A DNA stretch of 64,000 nt, taken from Obrimoposthia wandeli (Eukaryota). Position 1 is the stretch's first letter. Each line of letters begins with the position of its first letter. The stretch covers positions 1 through 64,000 of the forward strand of contig CDROCS010000321.1 of assembly GCA_977020255.1 (NCBI GenBank), read 5' to 3'. Made by a program: the position numbers and the translations under genes. Below the pieces are notes generated by a model that was not told where the DNA came from, did not search any database, and worked only from the letters and a program-made list of their open reading frames with translations. Of the stretch, positions 1,347-21,375 are shown piece by piece.

Positions 1347-1466
1347 AAGCTAATAAATGACAGCTATATATATCTTATTTTGGCATGGGTTCATTACCGT
1401 TTTTAGTATCACGGATATGAACCTATATGGTTCTAGTTTTATTGCGGGTTTATACTGTAAAAGACA

Positions 1467-1892
1467 AGAAAGAACACTTGATAGCGCTGTTTCTTAGTGC
1501 CATTGATGACTTTACTTATTTGAGCGGGCGTCAAGATGTCGGGCAGGACTTATTTGAGCGGACGTCAAGATGTCGGGCAGGCGTTTCACTTGCGGTGGTT
1601 TAACAATATTGAGCCATTCCCACTGCTTGTCGAGGGTATAACGATAGAAAAACTGCAAGCCGTTACGATCTAATTTAACGGTGCTCCAGGAATGGGTTTG
1701 GATCAGGCTATTGAAGTAGTCCTTTAAATCAGCAGTAGTTAATCCGTCTGGTGATTTATCGAAATACGCACTAATCCGTCGAACTGCACGAGAATAAGCG
1801 TCAATGGTCGCAGGTCGTTTACCTTGCAACCTTAAGTTCGTAAGGTGTTGTTCATAAAGAACATTGAATAGTTGTTGTTGTGAGTGGTTCAT
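1467..1892 (-). pseudogene. Tyrosine recombinase N-terminal (SAM-like) fragment
   Basis: MNHSQQQLFNVLYEQHLTNLRLQGKRPATIDAYSRAVR matches the 4069-4956 protein. Frameshifted by a 34-bp tandem duplication (1514-1547/1548-1581) and truncated. Confidence 0.9.
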
Positions 1893-1986
1893 ACTGATTA
1901 CTCCAATAAGGCACCACGAATGGTGATGCTATTGGTAAGTATGAACGATGGCTTATTTACTCTGCCGCGTAGCGGCTTCGTTCAAC
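1467..1986 (-). mobile_element. Truncated, diverged copy of the recombinase/IS91-like element (right end plus 5' part of the recombinase gene)
   Basis: Clear nucleotide similarity to 4565-5049; ends in GCGGCTTCGTTCAAC like the intact copy. Confidence 0.9.
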
Positions 1987-2129: not shown

Positions 2130-2762
2130 TTGAAGAATTATTTTGAAAGTCCTTTTGCAGGTAAGTCTCTAAAAGAGCAAGTGACGAATCCAAATATTAT
2201 AGTGGGTGAGCACAGTTATTATTCTGGTTATTATCATAACCATAGCTTCGATGATTGTGCACGTTATTTACTTGCGGATAGGACAGATATTGATCAGCTA
2301 ATTATTGGCAGTTACTGCTCAATTGGTTCTGGTGCTGTGTTTATGATGGCTGGTAATCAAGGACATCAAAATAGTTGGGTTAGTACGTTTCCATTTTTCT
2401 ACCAAGACAATGAAAACTTTGCTGATGCTAAAGATGGTTTTGAGCGTTCGGGTGATACGGTTATTGGTAATGATGTGTGGATTGGCACTGAAGCTATGAT
2501 TATGAGTGGCGTATCTATCGGAGACGGTGCAATTATCGCAAGCCGTGCAGTTGTTACTAAGGATGTTCCACCATATTCAATAGTAGGTTCAAATCCAGCA
2601 AAACATATACGAAACAGGTTCAATGATACTGAAATCATACAGCTGTTAGAGATGAAATGGTGGGAGTGGAGTGAAGAACAAATTAAGGGGGCAATGGGCT
2701 TAATGTGTTCTTCAAATATTGGTGGTCTTTATGATTATTGGAAAACGTTAGCACGCTTATAA
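2130..2762 (+). CDS. catB: Type B chloramphenicol O-acetyltransferase (CatB/xenobiotic acetyltransferase) gene cassette
   Basis: MKNYFESPF...[19 protein letters not shown]...[21 protein letters not shown]...[12 protein letters not shown] hexapeptide repeats. Likely TTG start at 2130 after an AGAGGT RBS. Cassette bounded by GTTATAAGC and GCTTATAAC. Confidence 0.92.
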
Positions 2763-2811
2763 CAAATAAGAATAGGTGTCGCGCAGCCGACACCTTATTC
2801 GGGTGTTGAAC
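2757..2811. other. 55-bp attC-like hairpin (host R'' plus element left end)
   Basis: TTATAAC-AAATAA-GAATAGGTGTC-GCGCAGCC-GACACCTTATTC-GGGT-GTTGAAC; the stem has one extra base in its right arm. Confidence 0.8.
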
Positions 2812-3010
2812 AAGCCCGAGCTCTTCTTTATATAGTAAATTACGAGTTTGATCTTGATAGCACTGTCTTGGGCTAAATCCAAGACGAAAGGAAATTGAGA
2901 TAAATAACAGACCTGTTATTTATCAATTGATTAGCTAGTCTTAACCATGAAGTTCAATACCTCCAGTTCATATTCTTAATGCCATTATTCCTATTATGTT
3001 CGCCTTTCGG

Positions 3011-4072
3011 CTAGGTCGTTCGCGTGATACCAACACACCTCATTTCATGCTGACAGCAAGGACAAATACGGATTGCTTTGCTTGGTGTGGTTGCCGCGAG
3101 TAACGGCATTTTCCAATTGAACAGATGCAGTAATATGACTTGAATACGCACGCGTAACCGCTTGGCATTACCGTGTAAAAAACCATAATCTCTCACTCGC
3201 TGTAGTCCTTTTGGCAATACATGCTGCAAGATTAGCCAGAGGAATTTCAGCGTTGGTAAGATTCTGGTTTTCGTTGCTTGAGTTTGCCCGTCTTTATAGT
3301 TGAAGGTCACGGTATTATTGCTTGTGTCGATGATGTCTTTATCGGGCAATACGCCACGATATAAATAGCGTGACAGATATTGTAAGGCGGGAAGACCGTA
3401 ACCGACTTTGCGGCAATCAACGACCCATTTAGTGGGTAATGTGCCAGTGTTCGCGAGAGATAAATCAGCGTGCCGATTGATTGCATCAATCATTCTAGCT
3501 CGCCAGACTTTAGCCAGTGCAAAGGCGTTAAACAGATAGTTACTCTTACCTTTATGCCATTGGTTGCGCATTTTATTGTAGCTCCCACTGGCGACTATAA
3601 TGTGTAAGTGGGGATGTAAATTACGTTTCCTGCTGTGAGTATGCAAAACGGTGGTGAAGCCAATTTCACCGCCGTTTCTACGTTTAGCAAAATCCTTCAA
3701 TACCGATGCAGCAACTGAAAACATAGATTGATATAGCGCCTTGGATTGCGAACGCGCAAGCGTTCGTAACTCATAGGGCAAAGTGAACGTGACCATAAAA
3801 TAATGTACGGGTAGTAATTTTGATTGCTGACGCATGAGCCAATCAGAAGTGGTGCGCTGTTGGCATTGTGGACAATGGCGATGACCGCAAGAAAGTGGCA
3901 TTCGATCACCATGTTGGCAGTGATGGCAAAGCCATTGCGAGCAACCTTGGTTACTCGTTTTGCAACTGAGCATGGCGTAAATGGCGCGGCGACTATCATG
4001 TGAGAGTTGATTGCCATATTCACTTTCAAACTCTTGATGATGTTGACGAAGCAAGTCAATGAACGTACTCAT
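3011..4072 (-). CDS. IS91-family HUH (Y2) transposase
   Basis: N-terminal Zn-binding Cys cluster (SCKT...CHHC...SCGHRHCPQC), HUH motif LHPHLH, YLSRYLYRG tyrosines, RVRDYGFL, C-terminal CPCC. The ATG at 4072 overlaps the recombinase stop (ATGA). Confidence 0.92.
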   Translation of the reverse strand: MSTFIDLLRQHHQEFESEYGNQLSHDSRRAIYAMLSCKTSNQGCSQWLCHHCQHGDRMPLSCGHRHCPQCQQRTTSDWLMRQQSKLLPVHYFMVTFTLPYELRTLARSQSKALYQSMFSVAASVLKDFAKRRNGGEIGFTTVLHTHSRKRNLHPHLHIIVASGSYNKMRNQWHKGKSNYLFNAFALAKVWRARMIDAINRHADLSLANTGTLPTKWVVDCRKVGYGLPALQYLSRYLYRGVLPDKDIIDTSNNTVTFNYKDGQTQATKTRILPTLKFLWLILQHVLPKGLQRVRDYGFLHGNAKRLRVRIQVILLHLFNWKMPLLAATTPSKAIRICPCCQHEMRCVGITRTT

Positions 4073-4956
4073 TTCAAGCTCCAATCTAACGCTAACTTGT
4101 CAGCAAGGTGATTAATAGCGACCGCTGCATCTCGCTGTTTAAGTTGGGTTAGCTGCGTATATCGAGCGGTAGTATTGAGACTGGCATGACCAAGTAACAC
4201 TTGCAGCGAACGTAAGTCTAAACCATTTTCCAGCAAGTGAGTCGCAAAGCAATGACGTAGCGAATGGGGGCTAACGAGTTTATTGATATTACAATCACGT
4301 AAAACTTGTTTGATGGCTTTTTGAATGCCACCTTTATCCATCGGCGAGTTCATGCCGTTGCCAAGTCCAGGGAATATCAATCGTGCGTGATGGTGCGTTT
4401 GCCAATGACTGCGTAGCGCGTGCAGGGTTCGTTTTGGCAATGGCACCAATCTATCTTTGCCGCCTTTAGCTTCGCGGATATGCACTTGCATGGTCTGGCT
4501 ATCGATGTCATGAACCGTCAGGTTTAAGCCTTCACTTAAACGCAGACCCATGCTGTAAAGGGTGAGAAAGAACACTTGATAGCGCTGTTTCTTAGTGCCA
4601 TTGATGACTTTACTTATTTGCGCTGGCGTCAAGATATCGGGCAGACGTTTAACCTGTGGAGGTTTGACGATGTTGAGCCATTCCCATTGTTTATCAAGCG
4701 TGTAGCGATAGAAAAACTGCAAGCCGTTACGGTCTAATTTAATGGTGCTCCAAGAGTGAGTTTGGATAAGACTGTTAAAGTAATCCTTTAAATCAGCCGT
4801 TGTTAATCCATCGGGAGACTTATCAAAGTAAGCCGAAATACGTCGAACCGCACGAGAATAGGCATCAATAGTCGCTGGTCGTTTACCTTGCAGCCTTAAA
4901 TTGATAAGGTGTTGTTCATAAAGAAAATTAAATCGTTGCTGGTGTGAAGTGTTCAT
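4069..4956 (-). CDS. Tyrosine recombinase (phage-integrase family with N-terminal SAM-like domain)
   Basis: Catalytic set intact: GLRLSE (R), KGGK (K), HSLRH (HxxR), LLGH (H), TARY (Y). Lacks the IntI-specific insertion. Confidence 0.92.
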   Translation of the reverse strand: MNTSHQQRFNFLYEQHLINLRLQGKRPATIDAYSRAVRRISAYFDKSPDGLTTADLKDYFNSLIQTHSWSTIKLDRNGLQFFYRYTLDKQWEWLNIVKPPQVKRLPDILTPAQISKVINGTKKQRYQVFFLTLYSMGLRLSEGLNLTVHDIDSQTMQVHIREAKGGKDRLVPLPKRTLHALRSHWQTHHHARLIFPGLGNGMNSPMDKGGIQKAIKQVLRDCNINKLVSPHSLRHCFATHLLENGLDLRSLQVLLGHASLNTTARYTQLTQLKQRDAAVAINHLADKLALDWSLK

Positions 4957-5042
4957 ACTGAATCTCCAATGTCACCACCCTAATGGTGATGCTATTGGTA
5001 AGTATGAACGATGGCTTATTTACTCCGCCGCGCAGCGGCTTC

Positions 5043-5141
5043 GTTCAACAAGTTACTCAAACGGACGCTAAACAGTTGGCTAGCACTCGTTCCTCGTACA
5101 TTTTAGCCAACAATTTCGCGCCGCTTAATAAGGCGTTATGA
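5043..5141 (+). other. attC site (99 bp)
   Basis: R'' GTTCAAC, inner arms GTTGGCTA / TAGCCAAC, ends ...CCGCTTAATAAGGC GTTATGA; R' contains the ATG of the next cassette. Confidence 0.88.
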
Positions 5142-5668
5142 GTATTGGAGATTCCGTGGTATTCAAATATTTTCGTGATCCTGAAAATTTTGCATTTAAG
5201 ATTGATTCAGAATCAACATGTTCGATATGTGATAAGTCTGGCATATGGCTAGATGCTGAAGGTTACAGTGGCATAAATGAAATCAAGTGTATTTGTGATG
5301 AATGCCTTTCAGTCGGAAAATTGCTTCCTTTGGAAATATCAGCCAATCAGGTTGATATTGAGTCCAAAAATTCAGATGAAATTATCTATCGAACACCTGC
5401 TTTACCAAGTTGGCAAGATCAAGTATGGCCATACTTAGATGAAGACTATTGTGTTTTTGAAAAGCTTGCTTCTAAATTAGATTTTTTAGATAAAAATCAA
5501 TTTAAACAGTCATTTTCAGACATTGACCAAAAAACTTCCGATCTTGATTGGCTTTGGGATATGTTGCCAGATACTATTGTTTCAAATTTGGAAGATGGTA
5601 ACTATGATGTTTCTGTATATTTGTTTTCTAGAAATGACATAAAGCATTGTACTTGGGATGCGAATTAA
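5138..5668 (+). CDS. CbrC/UPF0167-family protein gene cassette
   Basis: FKYFRDP, CSIC, CICDECL, RTPALPSWQ motifs; bounded by GTTATGAG and CTCATAAC. Confidence 0.7.
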   Translation: MSIGDSVVFKYFRDPENFAFKIDSESTCSICDKSGIWLDAEGYSGINEIKCICDECLSVGKLLPLEISANQVDIESKNSDEIIYRTPALPSWQDQVWPYLDEDYCVFEKLASKLDFLDKNQFKQSFSDIDQKTSDLDWLWDMLPDTIVSNLEDGNYDVSVYLFSRNDIKHCTWDAN

Positions 5669-5671
5669 TAC

Positions 5672-5726
5672 TCATAACAAATAAGAATAGGTGTCGCGCA
5701 GCCGACACCTTATTCGGGTGTTGAAC
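5672..5726. other. Second 55-bp attC-like hairpin (host R'' plus element left end)
   Basis: After TCATAAC the sequence is identical to 2764-2811. Confidence 0.8.
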
Positions 5727-5928
5727 AAGCCCGAGCTCTTCTTTATATAGTAAATAACGTGTTTGATCTTGATGGGCACTTCGTCTTGGGGCTAAATCCA
5801 AGACGAGCGAAATTGAGATAAATAACAGATCTGTTATTTATCAATTAATTAGCCAGTCTTAACCATGAAGTTCAATACCTCCAGTTCATATTCTTAATGC
5901 CATTATCCTTATTATGTTCGCCTTTCGG

Positions 5929-6395
5929 CTAGGTCGTTCGCGTGATACCAACGCACTTCATTTCATGCTGACAGCAAGGGCAAATACGTATTGCTTTGCT
6001 TGGTGTTGTTGCTGCGAGTAACGGCATTTTCCAATTGAACAGATGCAGTAATATGATTTGAATACGCATTCTCAGCCGTTTGGCATTACCGTGTAAAAAA
6101 CCATAATCTCTCACTCGCTGTAGTCCTTTTGGCAACACATGCTGCAAGATTAGCCAGAGGAATTTCAGCGTTGGTAAGATTCTGGTTTTTGTTGCTTGAG
6201 TTTGCCCGTCTTTATAGTTGAAGGTCACGGTATTATTGCTTGTGTTAATGATGTCTTTATCGGGCAATACGCCCCGATATAAATAGCGTGACAGATATTG
6301 TAAGGCGGGAAGACCGTAACCGACTTTGCGGCAATCAACGACCCATTTAGTGGGTAATGTGCCAGTGTTCGCGAGAGATAAATCAGCGTACTCAT
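5929..6395 (-). pseudogene. IS91-family transposase pseudogene
   Basis: ~595-bp deletion joining copy-1 positions 3469 and 4064 through a CGT microhomology; removes the Zn-binding and HUH motifs. Confidence 0.9.
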
Positions 6396-7310
6396 TTCAA
6401 GCTCCAATCTAACGCTAACTTGTCAGCAAGGTGATTAATAGCGACCGCTGCATCTCGCTGTTTAAGTTGGGTTAGCTACGTATATCGAGCGGTAGTATTG
6501 AGACTGGCATGACCAAGTAACACTTGCAGCGAACGTAAGTCTAAACCATTTTCCAGCAAGTGAGTCGCAAAGCAATGAGGGGGCTAACGAGTTTATTGAT
6601 ATTACAATCACGTAAAACTTGTTTGATGGCTTTTTCCTCTTATTTCAAAAAAATCCGCCTTTATCCATCGGCGAGTTCATTCCATTACCGAGTCCAGGGA
6701 AGATTAATCGCGCATGATGATGGGTTTGCCAATGGATTCGGAGTGCGTTCAGTGTTCGTTTGGGCAATGGCACTAATCTATCTTTACCGCCCTTAGCATC
6801 GCGGATATGGACTTGCATAGTTTGGCTATCAATATCATGAATAGTCAGATTTAAACCTTCACTTAAACGCAGACCCATGCTGTAAAGGGTGAGAAAGAAC
6901 ACTTGATAGCGCTATTTCTTAGTGCCATTGATGACTTTACTTATTTGCGCTGGGGCCAAGATATCGGGTAGGCGTCTACCATTATCTGAAAATAAGGCGG
7001 CGGCTTAACGATATTGAGCCATTCCCATTGTTACTCTTTTTTGCAATATGAGCGTGTAACGGTAGAAAAACTGCAAGCCGTTACGGTCTAATTTAATGGT
7101 GCTCCAAGAGTGAGTTTGGATAAGACTGTTAAAGTAATCCTTTAAATCAGCAGTTGTTAATCCATCGGGAGACTTATCAAAGTAAGCCGAAATACGTCGA
7201 ACCGCACGAGAATAGGCATCAATAGTCGCTGGTCGTTTACCTTGCAGCCTTAAATTGATAAGGTGTTGTTCATAAAGAAAATTAAATCGTTGCTGGTGTG
7301 AAGTGTTCAT
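6392..7310 (-). pseudogene. Tyrosine recombinase pseudogene
   Basis: ~10-bp deletion in the HSLR codons plus several short insertions (near 6635, 6980 and 7035) split it into three ORF pieces. Confidence 0.9.
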
Positions 7311-7397
7311 ACTGAATCTCCAATGTCACCACCCTAATGGTGATGCTATTGGTAAGTATGACTGGTGGGGGTAATTACTCCGCCGCGTAGCGGCTTC

Positions 7398-7452
7398 GTT
7401 CAACAAGAAATTCCTGCAGACGCCTACGGCGCAGCTGAATTTGGCGTTATGT
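7398..7452 (+). other. attC site (55 bp)
   Basis: GTTCAAC-AAGAA-ATTCCTGC-AGACGCCTACGGCGCA-GCTGAAT-TTGGC-GTTATGT. Confidence 0.85.
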
Positions 7453-7874: not shown

Positions 7875-7879
7875 AAAGC

Positions 7880-7956
7880 ATCGCCATCAAAAGTCGCTTC
7901 CCGTTTACCTTGCAGTCTTAAATTGATAAAGTGTTGTTCATAAATAAAATTAAATC
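7880..7956 (-). mobile_element. Remnant of the element recombinase 5' region
   Basis: Degenerate match to 4860-4935 (gtcgct...cgtttaccttgcagtcttaaattgataaagtgttgttcataaa). Confidence 0.75.
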
Positions 7957-8612: not shown

Positions 8613-8710
8613 TCGTTACCTTGCACTTTTAAATTTATAAGGTGTTGTTAATAAATAAATGAAATCGTTTCTTTTGTAAGTTATTCATACTGAATATTCC
8701 AATAAGGCAC
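8613..8710 (-). mobile_element. Remnant of the element recombinase 5' region and upstream leader, lacking the right terminus
   Basis: cgttaccttgcac...ggtgttgttaataaa...ttcatactgaatattccaataaggcac matches 1817-1915 and 4880-4975. Confidence 0.75.
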
Positions 8711-9057: not shown

Positions 9058-12000
9058 ATGACAGAGTTAAAACTGGATTGCCACAATGGCGATAATATTG
9101 TTGATTTATTTCGAAGCCAAATAGATCTACACGGAACAAATACAGCCGTATCTTTCCAAGATAGAAGCATTACCTATCAGCAACTTGGTGAAAAAAGTGT
9201 AGCGCTAGCATTATATTTACAACAGCAGGGCGTCTGTGTAGACGGATGTGTTGGCTTATTTGTAGACCCGTCAATTGAGTTAATGGTCGGTGTATGGGGA
9301 ATTTTACAGTCTGGCTCTGCTTATTTACCGTTAGCCCCCGAATATCCAGATGACCGTCTAAAATACATGCTTGAAAACAGCCAGTGTAAAATTATTGTAG
9401 TGCAAGATGAGTTAGTGGAACGACTGGCTACCCTCGTTTTAGATGATGTCGTATTAATAACATTTTCACAGGTAACTCACTTTTTCATCACCAAACAAAC
9501 ACCTCAATATTATATGCTCACACAGCATGCCGCATCACATAACTTAGCGTATGTAATTTACACATCGGGCAGTACAGGTAAACCAAAAGGTGTGATGATA
9601 GAACACAAAAGTATTGCTAACCAAATGGATTGGTTATCGACTCATTTTTCATTAGATTCTAAAAGTGTTGTTTTACAGAAAACACCAATGAGCTTTGATG
9701 CTGCTCAGTGGGAAATTCTGTCCTCATGTTGCGGAGCTCGGGTTGTCATGGGTGAGGCGAGCATATATAAAAATCCTGAGAAACTTGTAGATGCCATGAT
9801 GCATCATGACGTTTCAATGTTACAAGGCGTACCTACTTTACTACTCGCGCTACTCAATGTTGAAAAGTTCACCCTATGTACTTCGCTAACTCAAATATTT
9901 AGTGGCGGTGAAGCGCTGTCAAAACACCTTGCCAATGAACTTTCAGCGCAATTACCGCATTGCAGTATTATTAATTTATATGGGCCAACTGAGTGCACGA
10001 TCAACAGTTCAGCTCATATTGTTGATATTAAAGAAACTCAAGATAGTGCTGATACTATTTCTATTGGTAAACCTATACAAAATACACAGTATTATATTTT
10101 AAATAAGGATATGAAACCTGTCGCTGTAGGCGATATTGGTGAACTTTATATTGCTGGTGTCGGTTTAGCGAGAGGTTACTTACATCGTGATGATTTAACT
10201 GAAGATCGTTTCATAAGCCATTTTTTTGATGATCAAGAAATAAGTCAAAGACTCTACAAAACGGGTGATTTAGCTTATTGGAATGAAAATGGTTCGGTGC
10301 AATATTCAGGTCGAGTTGATAACCAAGTTAAGCTTCGAGGCTATCGCGTTGAATTAGATGAAATTAAATCCATAATAGAAAGTCACGACTGGGTAAATAA
10401 CGCTGCGGTATTCTTGAAGAAAGACCAGTATACCGGTTACCAAAACCTTATCTCGATGATCGAATTAAATCCCAGAGAAGCGGCGTTGATGGATCAAGGT
10501 AATCACGACCCCCATCATCAATCTAAGAAAAGTCGTAGCCAAGTTAAAATGCAGTTAACGAATACCGGTTGCCGCCAAGATGCTGAAATAGTGAATAAAT
10601 CAATAATTGATTTACCGGGTAAAATAGCGACCGAAAAACAACGGAAGCTTGTATTTTCCCGTAAAAGTTATCGTTTTTTTGAGGGTGGGAATATCACTAA
10701 AGCAGATATCCTTAACGTACTCAACCGTAAAGTAAATTACGATCATTATGCTAAATTATCCGATCTTAACTATGCTGATTTTGGTCGTATTTTAAGGTAT
10801 TTTGGCCAGTTCCATTCTGAGAATAGATTGTTACCTAAATATGGTTATGCGTCACCGGGTGCCTTGTATGCAACTCAAATGTATCTTGAATTAAGTGGTA
10901 TTGGAAACCTGACCCCTGGTTATTACTATTACCATCCAGTGCATCACCAATTAGTACTGCTTGCTGAGAAAGAATTTGCTGAAAAAGAGCTTGCTGAGAA
11001 TGAAGCCACTCACAATAAAAATAGCTGCACGGTACAATTTAAAGTGCATTTTGTGGGAAAAAAATCGGCCATTGAACCCATATATAAAAATAATATTTTA
11101 GAAGTATTAGAAATGGAAGTTGGTCACATGGTTGGATTTTTCGAAAATATCTTACCAAATTATGGTTTAAGTATTAAATCCAGCGATTACGTGCCCAGCA
11201 CAATGCAATTATTTGAGGTCGAGCAAAACGATTATTACCTTGGTAGCTTTAACATAGTGTCTGGTACTAAAGACGTCATGAATGATGATGTCAGCTTGTA
11301 TTTACAAGCTCATCCAGGGCAAGTATCAGGGCTTAAAGCCGGTAAATATTTGTATGAAAACGGTGAGTTAGAATACGTATCTAGTGAGATGATTTTAAAG
11401 AAACATGTTATTGCCATTAATCAATCTGTTTATGAAAGAGCTTCATTTGGGATTTCCGTTCTAAGTACAACGGATGAGCATTGGTTGGGATACATAAACT
11501 TAGGGCGCAAGTTACAATCGTTACAGATGAACGATTTTAATATTGGTTTCATGTCTTCAGGCTACAGCTCAAAAACGGGTAATAATCTACCATCAGCTAA
11601 GCGCATCCAGCATATTCTTAATAAAGATGTAGGGCCGTCATATTTCTTTATCGGCGGTCTTATCAGCGATGAGCAAATACTCAGTGATGGTATGAATGAA
11701 GATGTAGTTCACATGAAAGGACCATCAGAAATTATTCAAGATGATCTGGTCAAGTTTCTGCCAACTTATATGATGCCAAATACAATTAAAGTGATAGATA
11801 AAATGCCATTAACTGTCAATGGAAAAATAGATATTAAGGCGTTGCTTACGGTAGAGACTGATTGTATCCACGAGGAACATATCGAACCTGCAAATGACGT
11901 TGAACGTGTGGTATTAGATATTTGGAAGAAAGGCTTAAACAGAGACTTAATTTCAGTTAATACGGACTTTTTTGAACTCGGTGGTAATTCACTTATCGCT

Positions 12001-12909
12001 GTGAGTGTTATCAATAAAATAAATACAACCTTGTCTTGCGACTTACCATTACAAATAATTTTTTCTTCTCCAACAATTCAAAAGTTAGCACAAGCTGTTA
12101 ATCAAAAAGAGGATGATTCAGCGTCGCGGTTAGTCCCTTTTCAAGTAAAAGGTAAGGGGAGTCCCATTTACTGCTGGCCAGGATTGGGGGGATATTGTAT
12201 GAATTTGCGATTGTTGTCTGAAAAATTGGGTACAGACCGCGCTTTTTTTGGTGTGCAAGCATATGGTATTAATGTCGGAGAAACCCCTTACCAAACGATA
12301 AGCGAAATGGCTGCCAAAGATGTTGCGATGATAAAGCAAAATCAGGGCGAAGGTCCTTATACGTTATGGGGGTATTCATTTGGTGCACGCGTTGCTTTTG
12401 AGGCTTGTTATCAATTAGAGCAAGCTGGCGATGTCGTTGAAAACTTATACTTAATTGCACCAGGCTCACCGAAAGTAGCGGTTGGACATAGCTCAAGTGA
12501 AGATAGCGAAGCAACATTTACTAACAAAAAGTTTTTAACCATATTGTATTCGGTATTTATGGGGACGATAAAGAGTAATTCATTAATAGAGTGTTTGTCT
12601 GTTGTGGATACCAAAGACAAATTTATTCACTTTATCTGTGAGTTGAATAACCAACTCGAAACCGGTTTAGTGATGCGGATCATCGATATAGTCACGATGA
12701 CTTTTGAATTTACCTACTCGTTTAGTGAACTCAGACAGCGTCAATTAAAGGCGCCTATTAAAATCATTAAAGCGACCGGAGACGACTATTCATTTATTGA
12801 AAATAATAACGTTTTCTCTATCACTGAGCCTGTTATAGAAAAAATTGCAGCAAACCATTACACCATGCTTAAAACAACACATATTGATCAACTTGTTGCT
12901 GTTTTATAG
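9058..12909 (+). CDS. indC: Single-module NRPS A(Ox)-T-TE, indigoidine synthetase (IndC/BpsA type)
   Basis: 1283 aa. A-domain motifs YVIYTSGSTGKPKG, FSGGE, YGPTE, YKTGD; specificity residues read DAWQFGLINK (Gln). Embedded Ox domain (SRKSYRFF, YASPGALY), T domain DFFELGGNSL, TE WGYSFG. Confidence 0.9.
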   Translation: MTELKLDCHNGDNIVDLFRSQIDLHGTNTAVSFQDRSITYQQLGEKSVALALYLQQQGVCVDGCVGLFVDPSIELMVGVWGILQSGSAYLPLAPEYPDDRLKYMLENSQCKIIVVQDELVERLATLVLDDVVLITFSQVTHFFITKQTPQYYMLTQHAASHNLAYVIYTSGSTGKPKGVMIEHKSIANQMDWLSTHFSLDSKSVVLQKTPMSFDAAQWEILSSCCGARVVMGEASIYKNPEKLVDAMMHHDVSMLQGVPTLLLALLNVEKFTLCTSLTQIFSGGEALSKHLANELSAQLPHCSIINLYGPTECTINSSAHIVDIKETQDSADTISIGKPIQNTQYYILNKDMKPVAVGDIGELYIAGVGLARGYLHRDDLTEDRFISHFFDDQEISQRLYKTGDLAYWNENGSVQYSGRVDNQVKLRGYRVELDEIKSIIESHDWVNNAAVFLKKDQYTGYQNLISMIELNPREAALMDQGNHDPHHQSKKSRSQVKMQLTNTGCRQDAEIVNKSIIDLPGKIATEKQRKLVFSRKSYRFFEGGNITKADILNVLNRKVNYDHYAKLSDLNYADFGRILRYFGQFHSENRLLPKYGYASPGALYATQMYLELSGIGNLTPGYYYYHPVHHQLVLLAEKEFAEKELAENEATHNKNSCTVQFKVHFVGKKSAIEPIYKNNILEVLEMEVGHMVGFFENILPNYGLSIKSSDYVPSTMQLFEVEQNDYYLGSFNIVSGTKDVMNDDVSLYLQAHPGQVSGLKAGKYLYENGELEYVSSEMILKKHVIAINQSVYERASFGISVLSTTDEHWLGYINLGRKLQSLQMNDFNIGFMSSGYSSKTGNNLPSAKRIQHILNKDVGPSYFFIGGLISDEQILSDGMNEDVVHMKGPSEIIQDDLVKFLPTYMMPNTIKVIDKMPLTVNGKIDIKALLTVETDCIHEEHIEPANDVERVVLDIWKKGLNRDLISVNTDFFELGGNSLIAVSVINKINTTLSCDLPLQIIFSSPTIQKLAQAVNQKEDDSASRLVPFQVKGKGSPIYCWPGLGGYCMNLRLLSEKLGTDRAFFGVQAYGINVGETPYQTISEMAAKDVAMIKQNQGEGPYTLWGYSFGARVAFEACYQLEQAGDVVENLYLIAPGSPKVAVGHSSSEDSEATFTNKKFLTILYSVFMGTIKSNSLIECLSVVDTKDKFIHFICELNNQLETGLVMRIIDIVTMTFEFTYSFSELRQRQLKAPIKIIKATGDDYSFIENNNVFSITEPVIEKIAANHYTMLKTTHIDQLVAVL

Positions 12910-12939
12910 CTAATTTACTCTTTTATTTAAGGAAGAATA

Positions 12940-13161
12940 ATGCCACATATAAATATTAAACATTTCCCTTCACTCAGTGAAGAACAGCATATAGCGTTGG
13001 CTAAAAGCATCACAGAAGCGGTAACTAAAGTGGTTGGTTGTGATGCCGGCGTTGTCTCTATTGCTGTAGAGCCCGTAGATCCCGAAGTGTGGAATGAACA
13101 AGTATATATTCCAGAAATTGTCGGACGAAAAGAGACGTTAATTAAGATACCTGAATATTAA
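12940..13161 (+). CDS. 4-oxalocrotonate tautomerase-family protein
   Basis: Begins MPHINIK (catalytic Pro1), 73 aa, VSIAVEPV...W; directly downstream of indC. Confidence 0.85.
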   Translation: MPHINIKHFPSLSEEQHIALAKSITEAVTKVVGCDAGVVSIAVEPVDPEVWNEQVYIPEIVGRKETLIKIPEY

Positions 13162-13229
13162 TCCAGTAAATAAGCGGTAGCATTCTATTAATCATTATTG
13201 ATTGCTACCCCCACAAACAAATAAATAGA

Positions 13230-13688
13230 TTAAGTAATGGGCATGACCATGCCAGGCATATTGCTAGGGCGTTCAACAAAACCCTGTTTTTGATAAACAC
13301 CCGCCACATTTGCTGCCGCCATTAAGCCAAAAAAAGCGCCTGGTTCGGCAATACTTTTTACCTGGCTGACCAAATGTTCAGTGATACGTTGACACAATCC
13401 TAGTTTTTGATGGGCAGGGTCAACAATCATATCTTGGAGGTAAAAATATTGATGGCCATCACCAACAATACGGCCCATAGCAACAGCTTGGCCTTGATGC
13501 CAGATACTGGCAAAGAAAATAGAATTAGACAGCGCTTTGGTTAAAGTGGGTTCGCTTAAGCTATCCCAACCCACCGAAGCCCGTAACCTAATGACGGTTT
13601 GGCTATCTAATATATGTTCTTTTAGTAGGTAATCATTCATTGAGGTTTGCCTTTGGCTAAAATTAAATAATACCTTAGTTAGATCCAA
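13230..13688 (-). CDS. GNAT family N-acetyltransferase
   Basis: MGRIVGDG...YLQDMIVDPAHQKLGL...VYQKQGF. Confidence 0.85.
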   Translation of the reverse strand: MDLTKVLFNFSQRQTSMNDYLLKEHILDSQTVIRLRASVGWDSLSEPTLTKALSNSIFFASIWHQGQAVAMGRIVGDGHQYFYLQDMIVDPAHQKLGLCQRITEHLVSQVKSIAEPGAFFGLMAAANVAGVYQKQGFVERPSNMPGMVMPIT

Positions 13689-19523: not shown

Positions 19524-19941
19524 AAACAATAATAGGTGTCGCGTAGCTGCCACTTAAGTCATTCGAGTGATCCAAAAACATGTCATTTCATGGTGGTAGC
19601 AAAAACCGATGAGTTTTGTTTTAATCATGTTTTACCATGCTGTATTCCAATTTCATAGCGGCATCAATATTAGTTAAATTCGTAATTTAAACGCTTTCGT
19701 ATTCCCCGTAAAAACCATAATCCCTTAGTCGTTGAAATTCAACATACTGCGCTAGAATAACCATAAATGGTAACTGAGCGTTTACCTTGCAGCCTCAGGT
19801 TGATAAGATGTTGTTCATAAAGAAAATTAAATTATTATTGTAAATGATCCATACTGTGAACTTGAATAAGACATCACCATAATGGTGATGTTATTGGTTA
19901 GTATGACTGGTCGGGTAAACTCTGTAGCGTATTCGTTCAAA
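19524..19941 (-). mobile_element. Highly degenerate ~420-bp internally deleted derivative of the element, retaining both ends
   Basis: Left end aaacaataataggtgtcgcgtagc after acataat, a transposase scrap reading RLRDYGFLRG on the minus strand near 19705-19735, the recombinase leader, and a right end ...ttcgttcaa. Confidence 0.7.
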
Positions 19942-20853: not shown

Positions 20854-21267
20854 ATGAAAAAATAGTTATTTATTTAGCTTTACTAGTTGGTATCACTGGT
20901 TGTTCAAATCAGCAATACCCTGCAAAGCTCAACATGGTAAAAACATAGATGTTGAAGCAAATAGAAGTATTATAGAAGGTTTGGTCTCTGGCGGGGGAAA
21001 GCTCCTGATTCGTTGAAGAATTTGAAATTAACTTCAAGGAAATGTTACTTAGCAAAACCATTTGTTACTGACTATGTAAGCCAGTCTGAATCATGGTGTG
21101 TCGTTGCAAATGATCAAGCGACTAATTCGTATGGTGGTTATGTACGCGGTAATAATGTCATCTATTATAATAAATTAACGAACCAATTGATCCAAAGTTC
21201 ATTGAACAAGATTGCTTCTGATGCATTTGTCTATGAGATGAATGAGTACTTTGTGGTTCTCATGTGA
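20854..21267 (+). pseudogene. Frameshifted lipoprotein gene
   Basis: atgaaaaaatagtt start, then an out-of-frame LALLVGITGCSNQ lipobox; the 3' part is the 21013-21267 ORF. Confidence 0.45.
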
Positions 21268-21320
21268 ACTTTTCATCGCATATTAGGAATAGATGTTAGG
21301 CAGAGTTGATACTTACGCAA

Positions 21321-21375
21321 GTGTTGAGCAAGCCCGACTCTAGTAAATCAATGCATGACCCGCCGCTTCGTTTAA
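21321..21375. mobile_element. Very short fusion of left-end and right-end element sequences
   Basis: gtgttgagcaagcccgactct-agtaaat (compare 2803-2840) followed by cgccgcttcgttt (compare the right end). Confidence 0.5.

Follow-up and report, generated by a model that had tools for sequence, protein, structure and literature searches.

Insertion sequences (IS) of the IS91 family, among them IS91, IS801 and IS1294, encode a Y2 HUH transposase with an N-terminal zinc-binding domain, possess distinct ter and ori ends with subterminal palindromes, leave no target duplication and carry an upstream open reading frame (ORF) whose stop codon overlaps the transposase start. In IS91 this overlapping pair is orf121-tnpA, and only the single-stranded circle of the bottom strand inserts (PMC13181058). 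Family members with an integrase are already known; a published classification assigns the tyrosine recombinases borne by such elements to an 'Integron-like' subgroup, as the closest homologues of the integron integrase IntI that lack its insertion (10.1101/542381), and the literature searched assigns them no function. We analyzed an element of this kind in the first 64,000 nucleotides of contig CDROCS010000321.1 from the Obrimoposthia wandeli assembly GCA_977020255.1 (hereafter the window, meaning the whole 64-kb stretch), where its intact copy, copy A, is 2.3 kb long, occupies positions 2764-5049 of a cassette array and carries two overlapping minus-strand genes. A preliminary description of the locus had proposed that the joined ends of the element imitate an attC site. 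We found that the element and its relatives insert mostly at the R'' box of attC sites in a single inverted polarity, and that their joined ends can fold into a conserved attC-like hairpin.

The element shares with the IS91 family the type of transposase, the distinct ends with their palindromes, the lack of a target duplication and the overlapping upstream ORF. It differs in that its upstream ORF encodes a tyrosine recombinase instead of Orf121, in that it targets the attC R'' box in one polarity whereas IS91 uses any GTTC/CTTG, in a probable crossover at G^TTA, one base inside the tetranucleotide, and in joined ends that form an attC-like R box and L stem. With integron cassettes it has in common the RYYYAAC/GTTRRRY boxes, a 7-bp R box, an extra L-stem base on the 3' arm of the strand that would be recombined, probable unit boundaries at G^TT, the order of genes followed by a site, and a recombinase of the IntI-like subgroup. 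In contrast to cassettes, it has one bulge, its recombinase lacks the IntI insertion, it inserts inverted at R'', and it carries its own enzymes, including an HUH nuclease. The IS1111-attC group of the IS110 family and the group IIC-attC introns are likewise attC invaders with one set orientation, which for the introns is antisense to the cassettes (PMC9229058), but they rely on a DEDD transposase or on a ribozyme with a reverse transcriptase, use other insertion points and have no attC-like junction. Both proteins of the element match only IS91-transposase and phage-integrase family models, and no IS110-family DEDD domain was found. ISShvi3, an IS91-family element, lies beside an attC in a Shewanella integron whose authors saw no IS interrupting attC sites (PMC9229058); its description includes no R'' insertion, polarity or junction fold, and it is set apart here by that description and not by its sequence. 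Nor did the literature searched describe R''-specific inverted insertion, a conserved attC-like junction or the crossover point.

The boundaries of the element were established by comparison of its copies. Two further copies in the window (B and C) end at the same letters as copy A while the adjoining host attC remainders differ; after GTTCAAC the sequence changes from copy to copy, being each time the remainder of a different attC. The same ends recur in copies 66-69% identical on other contigs of the assembly, and in Moritella, Vibrio, Photobacterium, Aliivibrio, Pseudoalteromonas, Colwellia, Psychromonas, Rheinheimera and a metagenome-assembled genome (MAG) of Desulfobacteraceae, with transposase identities of 45-98%. 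Shared ends with differing flanks mean that the hairpin at the left end is not an attC belonging to the upstream cassette, and the boundaries are real. The family is large and found mostly in marine bacteria: of 8,000 candidate proteins tested, 7,282 scored E <= 1e-30.

Some ends are irregular. 'Solo' hairpins were considered as independent host attCs and rejected, since every one runs into element-interior sequence (AAGCC...); they are therefore truncated copies. At the ori end of one relative (L028, about 5265-5360) the whole hairpin is duplicated after GTT, and in another (L096, about 4568-4650) TTCTTATTTGTT is repeated; either may be a footprint or a slippage product. An unrelated repeat, AGCAGGACAC.CATCCTAAATTGAA..., cuts off the second left end in a metagenome contig (L114) and also truncates the hairpin in locus L098.

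To define the target, empty sites were reconstructed for 30 insertions. About 25 of the 30-31 reconstructed sites are attCs cut at xTAAC^AAR, between the R'' box and the spacer. All attC insertions share one inverted polarity, with the element's genes antisense to the cassettes, and in every one of them the plus strand of the element is contiguous with the attC top strand, which is the target strand that had been proposed; this includes the attC of aadA1 and two intI-anchored arrays. The extra base usual in L'' is found, at these host sites, on the strand that continues into the element's plus strand. No insertion occupied attI or, in the orientation of the array, R' (G^TT), the places where a cassette would be expected. 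The sequence motif alone cannot explain the attC specificity, because TAACAAR occurs 43 times in the 64-kb window. Two insertions (L057 and L114, the latter on a metagenome contig) lie at the left junction of another copy.

The polarity holds in different integron contexts. Arrays on contig C253 of the assembly are preceded by an intI, complete in one case (469.6 bits) and decayed in the other, and their element copies have the same polarity as elsewhere; dnaA lies at 1.03 Mb of this contig. On the Escherichia coli IncC plasmid NZ_LT985243.1 (L117, record 10953-13298), a Rheinheimera-type member (68% recombinase protein identity) sits in the attC of aadA1 within a class 1 integron of the order intI1, aac(6')-Ib3, aadA2, cmlA1, aadA1, element, qacEdelta1, sul1. 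It cuts this known 60-nt site exactly at GTCTAAC^AATTC, with its genes antisense. Beyond this plasmid, the plasmid and E. coli collections yielded short pieces of that element at most. In the Desulfobacteraceae MAG (L055), the host attC remainder on the right flank starts with an 18-nt direct duplication (AAGCGCCTCTACTCG[A/G]AC, twice); its first copy ends in AAC and may be the scar of an earlier insertion or excision.

The position of the exchange is harder to read, since both ends share AAC and the boundary is ambiguous in most copies; apart from this shared AAC, the flanks carry no target duplication. A Psychromonas MAG provides a marker. In all four of its insertions (4/4, at different sites) the left junction reads TAAT and the right one GTTCAAC; four attCs of the same loci that lack an insertion read TAAC. 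At one occupied site of this lineage (the T lineage below), the flanks show that the R' of the attC itself pairs without mismatch with the seven bases preceding the T. On the simplest reading the left-junction base travels with the element, and exchange takes place at TAA^C on the plus strand and G^TT on the other. This would place the crossover according to the integron rule, one base inside the IS91 tetranucleotide: the ori end abuts GTTA, and in the T lineage the first base of this tetranucleotide appears to move with the element. It would also support the cleavage in the AAC of the 5' arm, at the host junction, that had been predicted. The mobile unit is then probably 2763-5048 and not 2764-5049, the last C of TTATAAC (2763) being element-borne if the cut is AA^C, and the unit would formally resemble a cassette (TTGAAC ... 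attC-like site ... G).

The junction itself agrees in letters and coordinates with the preliminary description, in that the right end (5043-5049) joined to the left end (2764-2811) gives 55 nt bounded by GTTCAAC and GTTGAAC, R boxes complementary at 7/7 positions, with a single extra base, a bulged T in the plus-strand 3' arm of the 12-bp stem. From left to right, the left end consists of the spacer AAATAA, the arm GAATAGGTGTCG, the loop CGCAGC, the arm CGACACC-T-TATTC, the spacer GGGT and the box GTTGAAC. In the computed fold of the joined plus strand, the 7-bp R box is separated from the stem by unpaired spacers of 6 and 4 nt, and the stem ends in a 6-nt loop. The free energy of this fold is -13.8 kcal/mol (DNA parameters), compared to -4.6 +/- 1.8 for dinucleotide shuffles (z = -5.0; 1 of 1000 shuffles equals it).

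Pairing the ter and ori ends of 37 elements gave 24 distinct junctions of 54-61 nt, drawn from other contigs of the assembly and from more than 20 other genomes from Moritella to Desulfobacteraceae. All 24 have the same fold architecture. In all variants but one, where the outermost pair is an A.C, the R box is fully paired, its other changes giving T.G pairs; the L stem takes two to five kinds of pair at most positions, with few that are neither Watson-Crick nor G.T. The R-box complementarity is thus not lost among homologous ends, a result that would have spoken against the preliminary description, but is conserved and covarying. When 44 distinct L modules were folded as the plus strand we counted 22 G.T pairs versus 2 A.C mismatches, counts that, like the covariation, are not independent because the copies are related, and that we estimate to represent about 10 G.T events against 2 A.C events. 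Since the bias would be reversed if the modules were read as the minus strand, it fits folding of the plus strand, which is also the more stable fold in 20 of the 24 junctions when both strands are compared. By these comparisons the junction hairpin is conserved well beyond chance. The identification of the plus strand with the strand that IS91 transfers agrees both with this wobble bias (22 versus 2) and with the insertion of the bottom-strand circle in IS91 (PMC13181058). The R-box pairing can be extended by 5 bp, GGCTT before GTTCAAC with AAGCC after GTTGAAC, with one bulged C (5037-5049 with 2805-2816). Both pentamers are invariant in all relatives, and GGCTT overlaps the stem of the ter hairpin, so that the two folds compete.

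The earlier claim of a perfect attC mimic needs to be divided. RYYYAAC and GTTRRRY boxes that pair as an R box, an unpaired spacer, an L stem and the extra base in the 3' arm are all present. The bottom strand of aadA-type attCs has an unpaired spacer of 6 by 4-5 nt, an asymmetry like that of the junction. The resemblance ends at the extrahelical bases: canonical attC bottom strands have two of them on one side, typically T-N6-G, which are read by IntI (PMC3053210), whereas the junction has a single bulged T at a different distance, 5 nt from the spacer. In the Vibrio class of the element there are bulges on both arms. The junction is an attC-like site for a recombinase without a reader of extrahelical bases, and not a canonical attC.

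The recombinase has the corresponding anatomy. It matches PF00589 and PF13495, and the XerA, XerC and XerD models match it about equally. The match to the integron integrase model TIGR02249 falls into two pieces (model positions 15-180 and 237-303) and reaches 161.7 bits versus a cut-off of 265; positions about 181-236 are skipped, and the IntI-specific insertion, the alpha-I2 region that contacts extrahelical bases, is absent. The catalytic residues R139, K164/K167, H231-x-x-R234, H257 and Y266 are invariant in 12 elements. The transposase matches PF04986, PF14319 and NF033538 (360.9 bits, cut-off 125), contains the zinc-binding domain, and has HPHLH (HUH) and YLSRYLY motifs that are invariant in 13 sequences. 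Across the same elements the recombinase is 66-77% identical and the transposase 56-75%. Because the HUH/Y2 motifs and the catalytic residues of the recombinase are invariant, both enzymes are under purifying selection. The stop codon of the recombinase gene overlaps the start of the transposase gene (ATGA), the arrangement of orf121-tnpA in IS91 (PMC13181058), and the two genes, recombinase upstream, are translationally coupled. Distinct ori and ter ends carry subterminal palindromes (ter 5027-5039, ori side 2770-2800), with others inside. Judged by its sequence, the element belongs to the IS91 family.

We consider the chances about even that the transposase makes a circle of the plus strand, whose folded junction the recombinase then inserts into the top strand of attC. 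By analogy to IS91, the transposase would start rolling-circle synthesis and release a circle of the plus strand, which lies opposite the transposase coding strand. The joined ends would then fold into the R box, spacer and L stem with one bulge, as suggested by the computed and conserved fold, and the element's recombinase may pair this hairpin with a folded or single-stranded attC top strand and exchange one strand at AA^C, the position indicated by the lineage marker. Replication would finally resolve the product and fix the insertion. Much of this logic, an HUH enzyme combined with a tyrosine recombinase, is that of CTX-phi, in which rolling-circle replication yields a plus-strand circle, a folded hairpin mimics a recombination site, and a one-strand exchange is resolved by replication. 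CTX-phi uses the host XerCD and the dif site, whereas the present element brings its own recombinase and targets attC. In sedentary integrons the attC top strands are the lagging-strand template (PMC11023631); as they are not used by IntI, the element would exploit an unused substrate, which offers a rationale for its inverted polarity. A bolder version, possible but held only tentatively, is that of an autonomous inverted cassette: the HUH enzyme makes single-stranded copies, and an IntI-like recombinase without the extrahelical reader integrates them into the attC top strand. If this is true, attC sites would support a second recombination system, an autonomous one, and the family could be a living relative of the ancestor of the integron integrase-attC pair.

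Several observations weigh against this proposed cycle. Neither a circle nor an empty site was observed in the data searched. The joint from 5049 to 2764 was not found in Logan contigs of the three runs containing the stretch, a raw-read run that was also searched lacked the stretch, and joints in public data that 'go back' are explained by neighbouring copies. Logan contigs of unit length (2281-2288 bp) were considered as permuted circles and rejected; since their termini are the usual element ends or lie in host attC, they are repeat collapses. The junction pattern had no match in the first set of relative loci that was fetched, and a metagenome scan gave one head-to-tail case carrying the exact predicted junction (L114, OJFP01002730.1, 2449-5056), in which the full element is succeeded by 310 bp that repeat its left end with 100% identity; this may be a tandem insertion. 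In Moritella genomes the acetyltransferase gene upstream of copy A has only homologues of 82-83% identity, with the attC after the gene absent. About 5 of the 30-31 insertions lie outside recognisable attCs (among them Psychromonas L034 and L036, and also L050). The crossover is inferred from one lineage in one MAG, which could instead prefer TAAT targets, the junction shows a single bulge versus two extrahelical bases in real attCs, and the relatedness of the copies reduces the wobble counts as stated above. Two Moritella copies (L022, 3745-5330; L023, 3742-5285) have independently lost the recombinase gene while retaining the transposase gene and both ends, and the deletion junction of L022 recurs 6 kb away in the array at 92% identity.

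These last points, and the anatomy of the ends, which also fits plain IS91 rules (a ter tetranucleotide and palindrome, an ori hairpin abutting GTTN), could also be read as ordinary IS91 transposition. The HUH transposase alone would cut ori and ter, circularise the bottom strand and insert it beside GTTA; the hairpin would be the oriIS palindrome, the R-box pairing would guide the transposase, and the recombinase would serve as a target selector, a regulator like Orf121 or a resolvase. TnpA of IS91 can indeed insert a bottom-strand circle by itself (PMC13181058). The single subterminal ter palindrome, ori palindromes near the cleavage site, the upstream ORF with overlapping stop and start, the invariant HUH and Y2 motifs, and the recombinase-less derivatives with intact ends, one deletion junction of which occurs twice in an array, are all in keeping with it. 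We nevertheless regard this explanation, the main rival, as less likely, because insertion almost exclusively at attC R'', and in a single polarity, is not accounted for by a target of 4 nt, because the T-lineage crossover, one base inside the tetranucleotide and within a 7-bp duplex, would be an odd substrate for an HUH nuclease, and because the recombinase is better conserved than the transposase. Moreover, full copies in the same array could supply the enzyme in trans to copies that lack the recombinase gene.

Movement of the element by the host IntI, as a passive and unusual gene cassette inverted through rare top-strand recombination, seems to us distinctly improbable. The boundaries TTGAAC ... 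G, the attC-like 3' site with RYYYAAC/GTTRRRY boxes, the complete intI genes on some host contigs and the designation of ISShvi3 beside attC as 'a new gene cassette structure' (PMC9229058) would suit such a cassette. However, IntI acts in the reverse way to what is seen, the attC insertions being all inverted at R'' and none lying at attI or at the canonical R'; the pair of extrahelical bases read by IntI is missing from the junction, the element has its own conserved recombinase, and some insertions fall outside attCs. The involvement of a host IntI envisaged in the preliminary description is accordingly unlikely, no copy being in the canonical orientation. The 55-nt pairing could also be a mere by-product of a complete upstream attC (2757-2811) followed by an ordinary plus-oriented cassette with IS genes (2805-5135), given that on the plus strand alone TTATAAC ... 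GTTGAAC resembles a short attC and TTGAAC ... GTTCAAC ... G a cassette. We find this scarcely credible: the repeated unit in every copy spans the hairpin to GTTCAAC while the following sequence varies, the known 60-nt attC of aadA1 is split by the element, and the bulge polarity of the hairpin is opposite to that of host attCs. As the copy boundaries contradict it, the plus-oriented cassette reading was rejected.

Our favoured proposal, in which both enzymes act, allows a candidate substrate to be named for the IS91-borne recombinase, namely the conserved and covarying hairpin of the joined ends on the strand predicted to be transferred, and a candidate target, the R'' box of attC on the top strand. 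The finding links two systems of single-strand DNA, HUH transposons and integrons, and, beside group IIC-attC introns and IS1111-attC elements, adds a further kind of attC parasite. Members of the family interrupt attC sites and are scattered through whole arrays. One member has already reached a class 1 resistance integron, and in this E. coli IncC plasmid integron it could change cassette excision and hitch-hike with cassettes.

As for the setting, the transposase of the element is 98% identical to a Moritella dasanensis protein, and the contig of the window appears to be Moritella-like and bacterial. In the 1.35-Gb assembly at least 18 dnaA genes exceed the cut-off of their family, and four matches on different contigs exceed that for integron integrases (one with an internal stop); the assembly therefore contains many bacterial genomes; no intI was found on the window's own contig. 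A cassette array of short plus-strand ORFs occupies the first 9 kb of the window; the attC sites between these ORFs have xTAAC as R'' box and GTTAT as R' box. No family reached its gathering score in an Rfam scan of the window, and a naive attC scanner discriminated little on it. The features of the array and of the element are listed in Table 1.

Table 1. Coordinates of the element, its further copies and the adjoining host sites in the window
Feature	Position	Strand	Description
Host R'' box TTATAAC	2757-2763	+	Belongs to the attC of a hexapeptide-acetyltransferase cassette (ORF 2085-2762)
Left (ori-side) end	2764-2811	+	Spacer 2764-2769, L-stem arm 2770-2781, loop 2782-2787
Left end, remaining parts	2788-2811	+	L-stem arm with bulged T 2788-2800, spacer 2801-2804, GTTGAAC 2805-2811
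Non-coding region 3' of the transposase gene	2812-3010	-	Candidate oriIS region of IS91 type
IS91-family Y2 HUH transposase	3011-4072	-	353 amino acids, ATG at 4072
Tyrosine recombinase, IntI/Xer-like	4069-4956	-	295 amino acids, without the IntI-specific insertion
Ter-side subterminal hairpin GCCGC-GCA-GCGGC	5027-5039	+	3 nt from the terminal box
Right terminal box GTTCAAC	5043-5049	+	5' arm of the R box once the ends are joined
Remainder of the interrupted host attC	5050-5141	+	AAGTTACTC ... GGC-GTTATGA, then UPF0167 cassette ORF 5138-5668
Copy B	5679-7404	+	In the attC of the UPF0167 cassette, TCATAAC / ... / AAGAAATTCC
Copy C	about 1452-1986	+	Right 0.5 kb only; GTTCAAC at 1980-1986
Remnant of the recombinase 5' region	7877-7956	+	Directly after a cassette ORF; second remnant at 8616-8703

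Between the left end and the transposase gene, region 2812-3010 contains an invariant AAGCCCG beside the box, a TATATAG/TAAAT motif and two further palindromes. At the other end, the stem of the ter hairpin is invariant among relatives and its loop variable. Copy B has an internal deletion of the stretch equivalent to 3472-4057 of copy A, and its recombinase gene is decayed; copy C adjoins the remainder of a 125-nt attC that extends to 2104. Five successive cassette boundaries are occupied by a copy or a remnant (1452-1986, 2764-5049, 5679-7404, 7877-7956 and 8616-8703), and degenerate fragments of the element are found at 19746-19906 and about 21240-21330, outside any recognisable attC.

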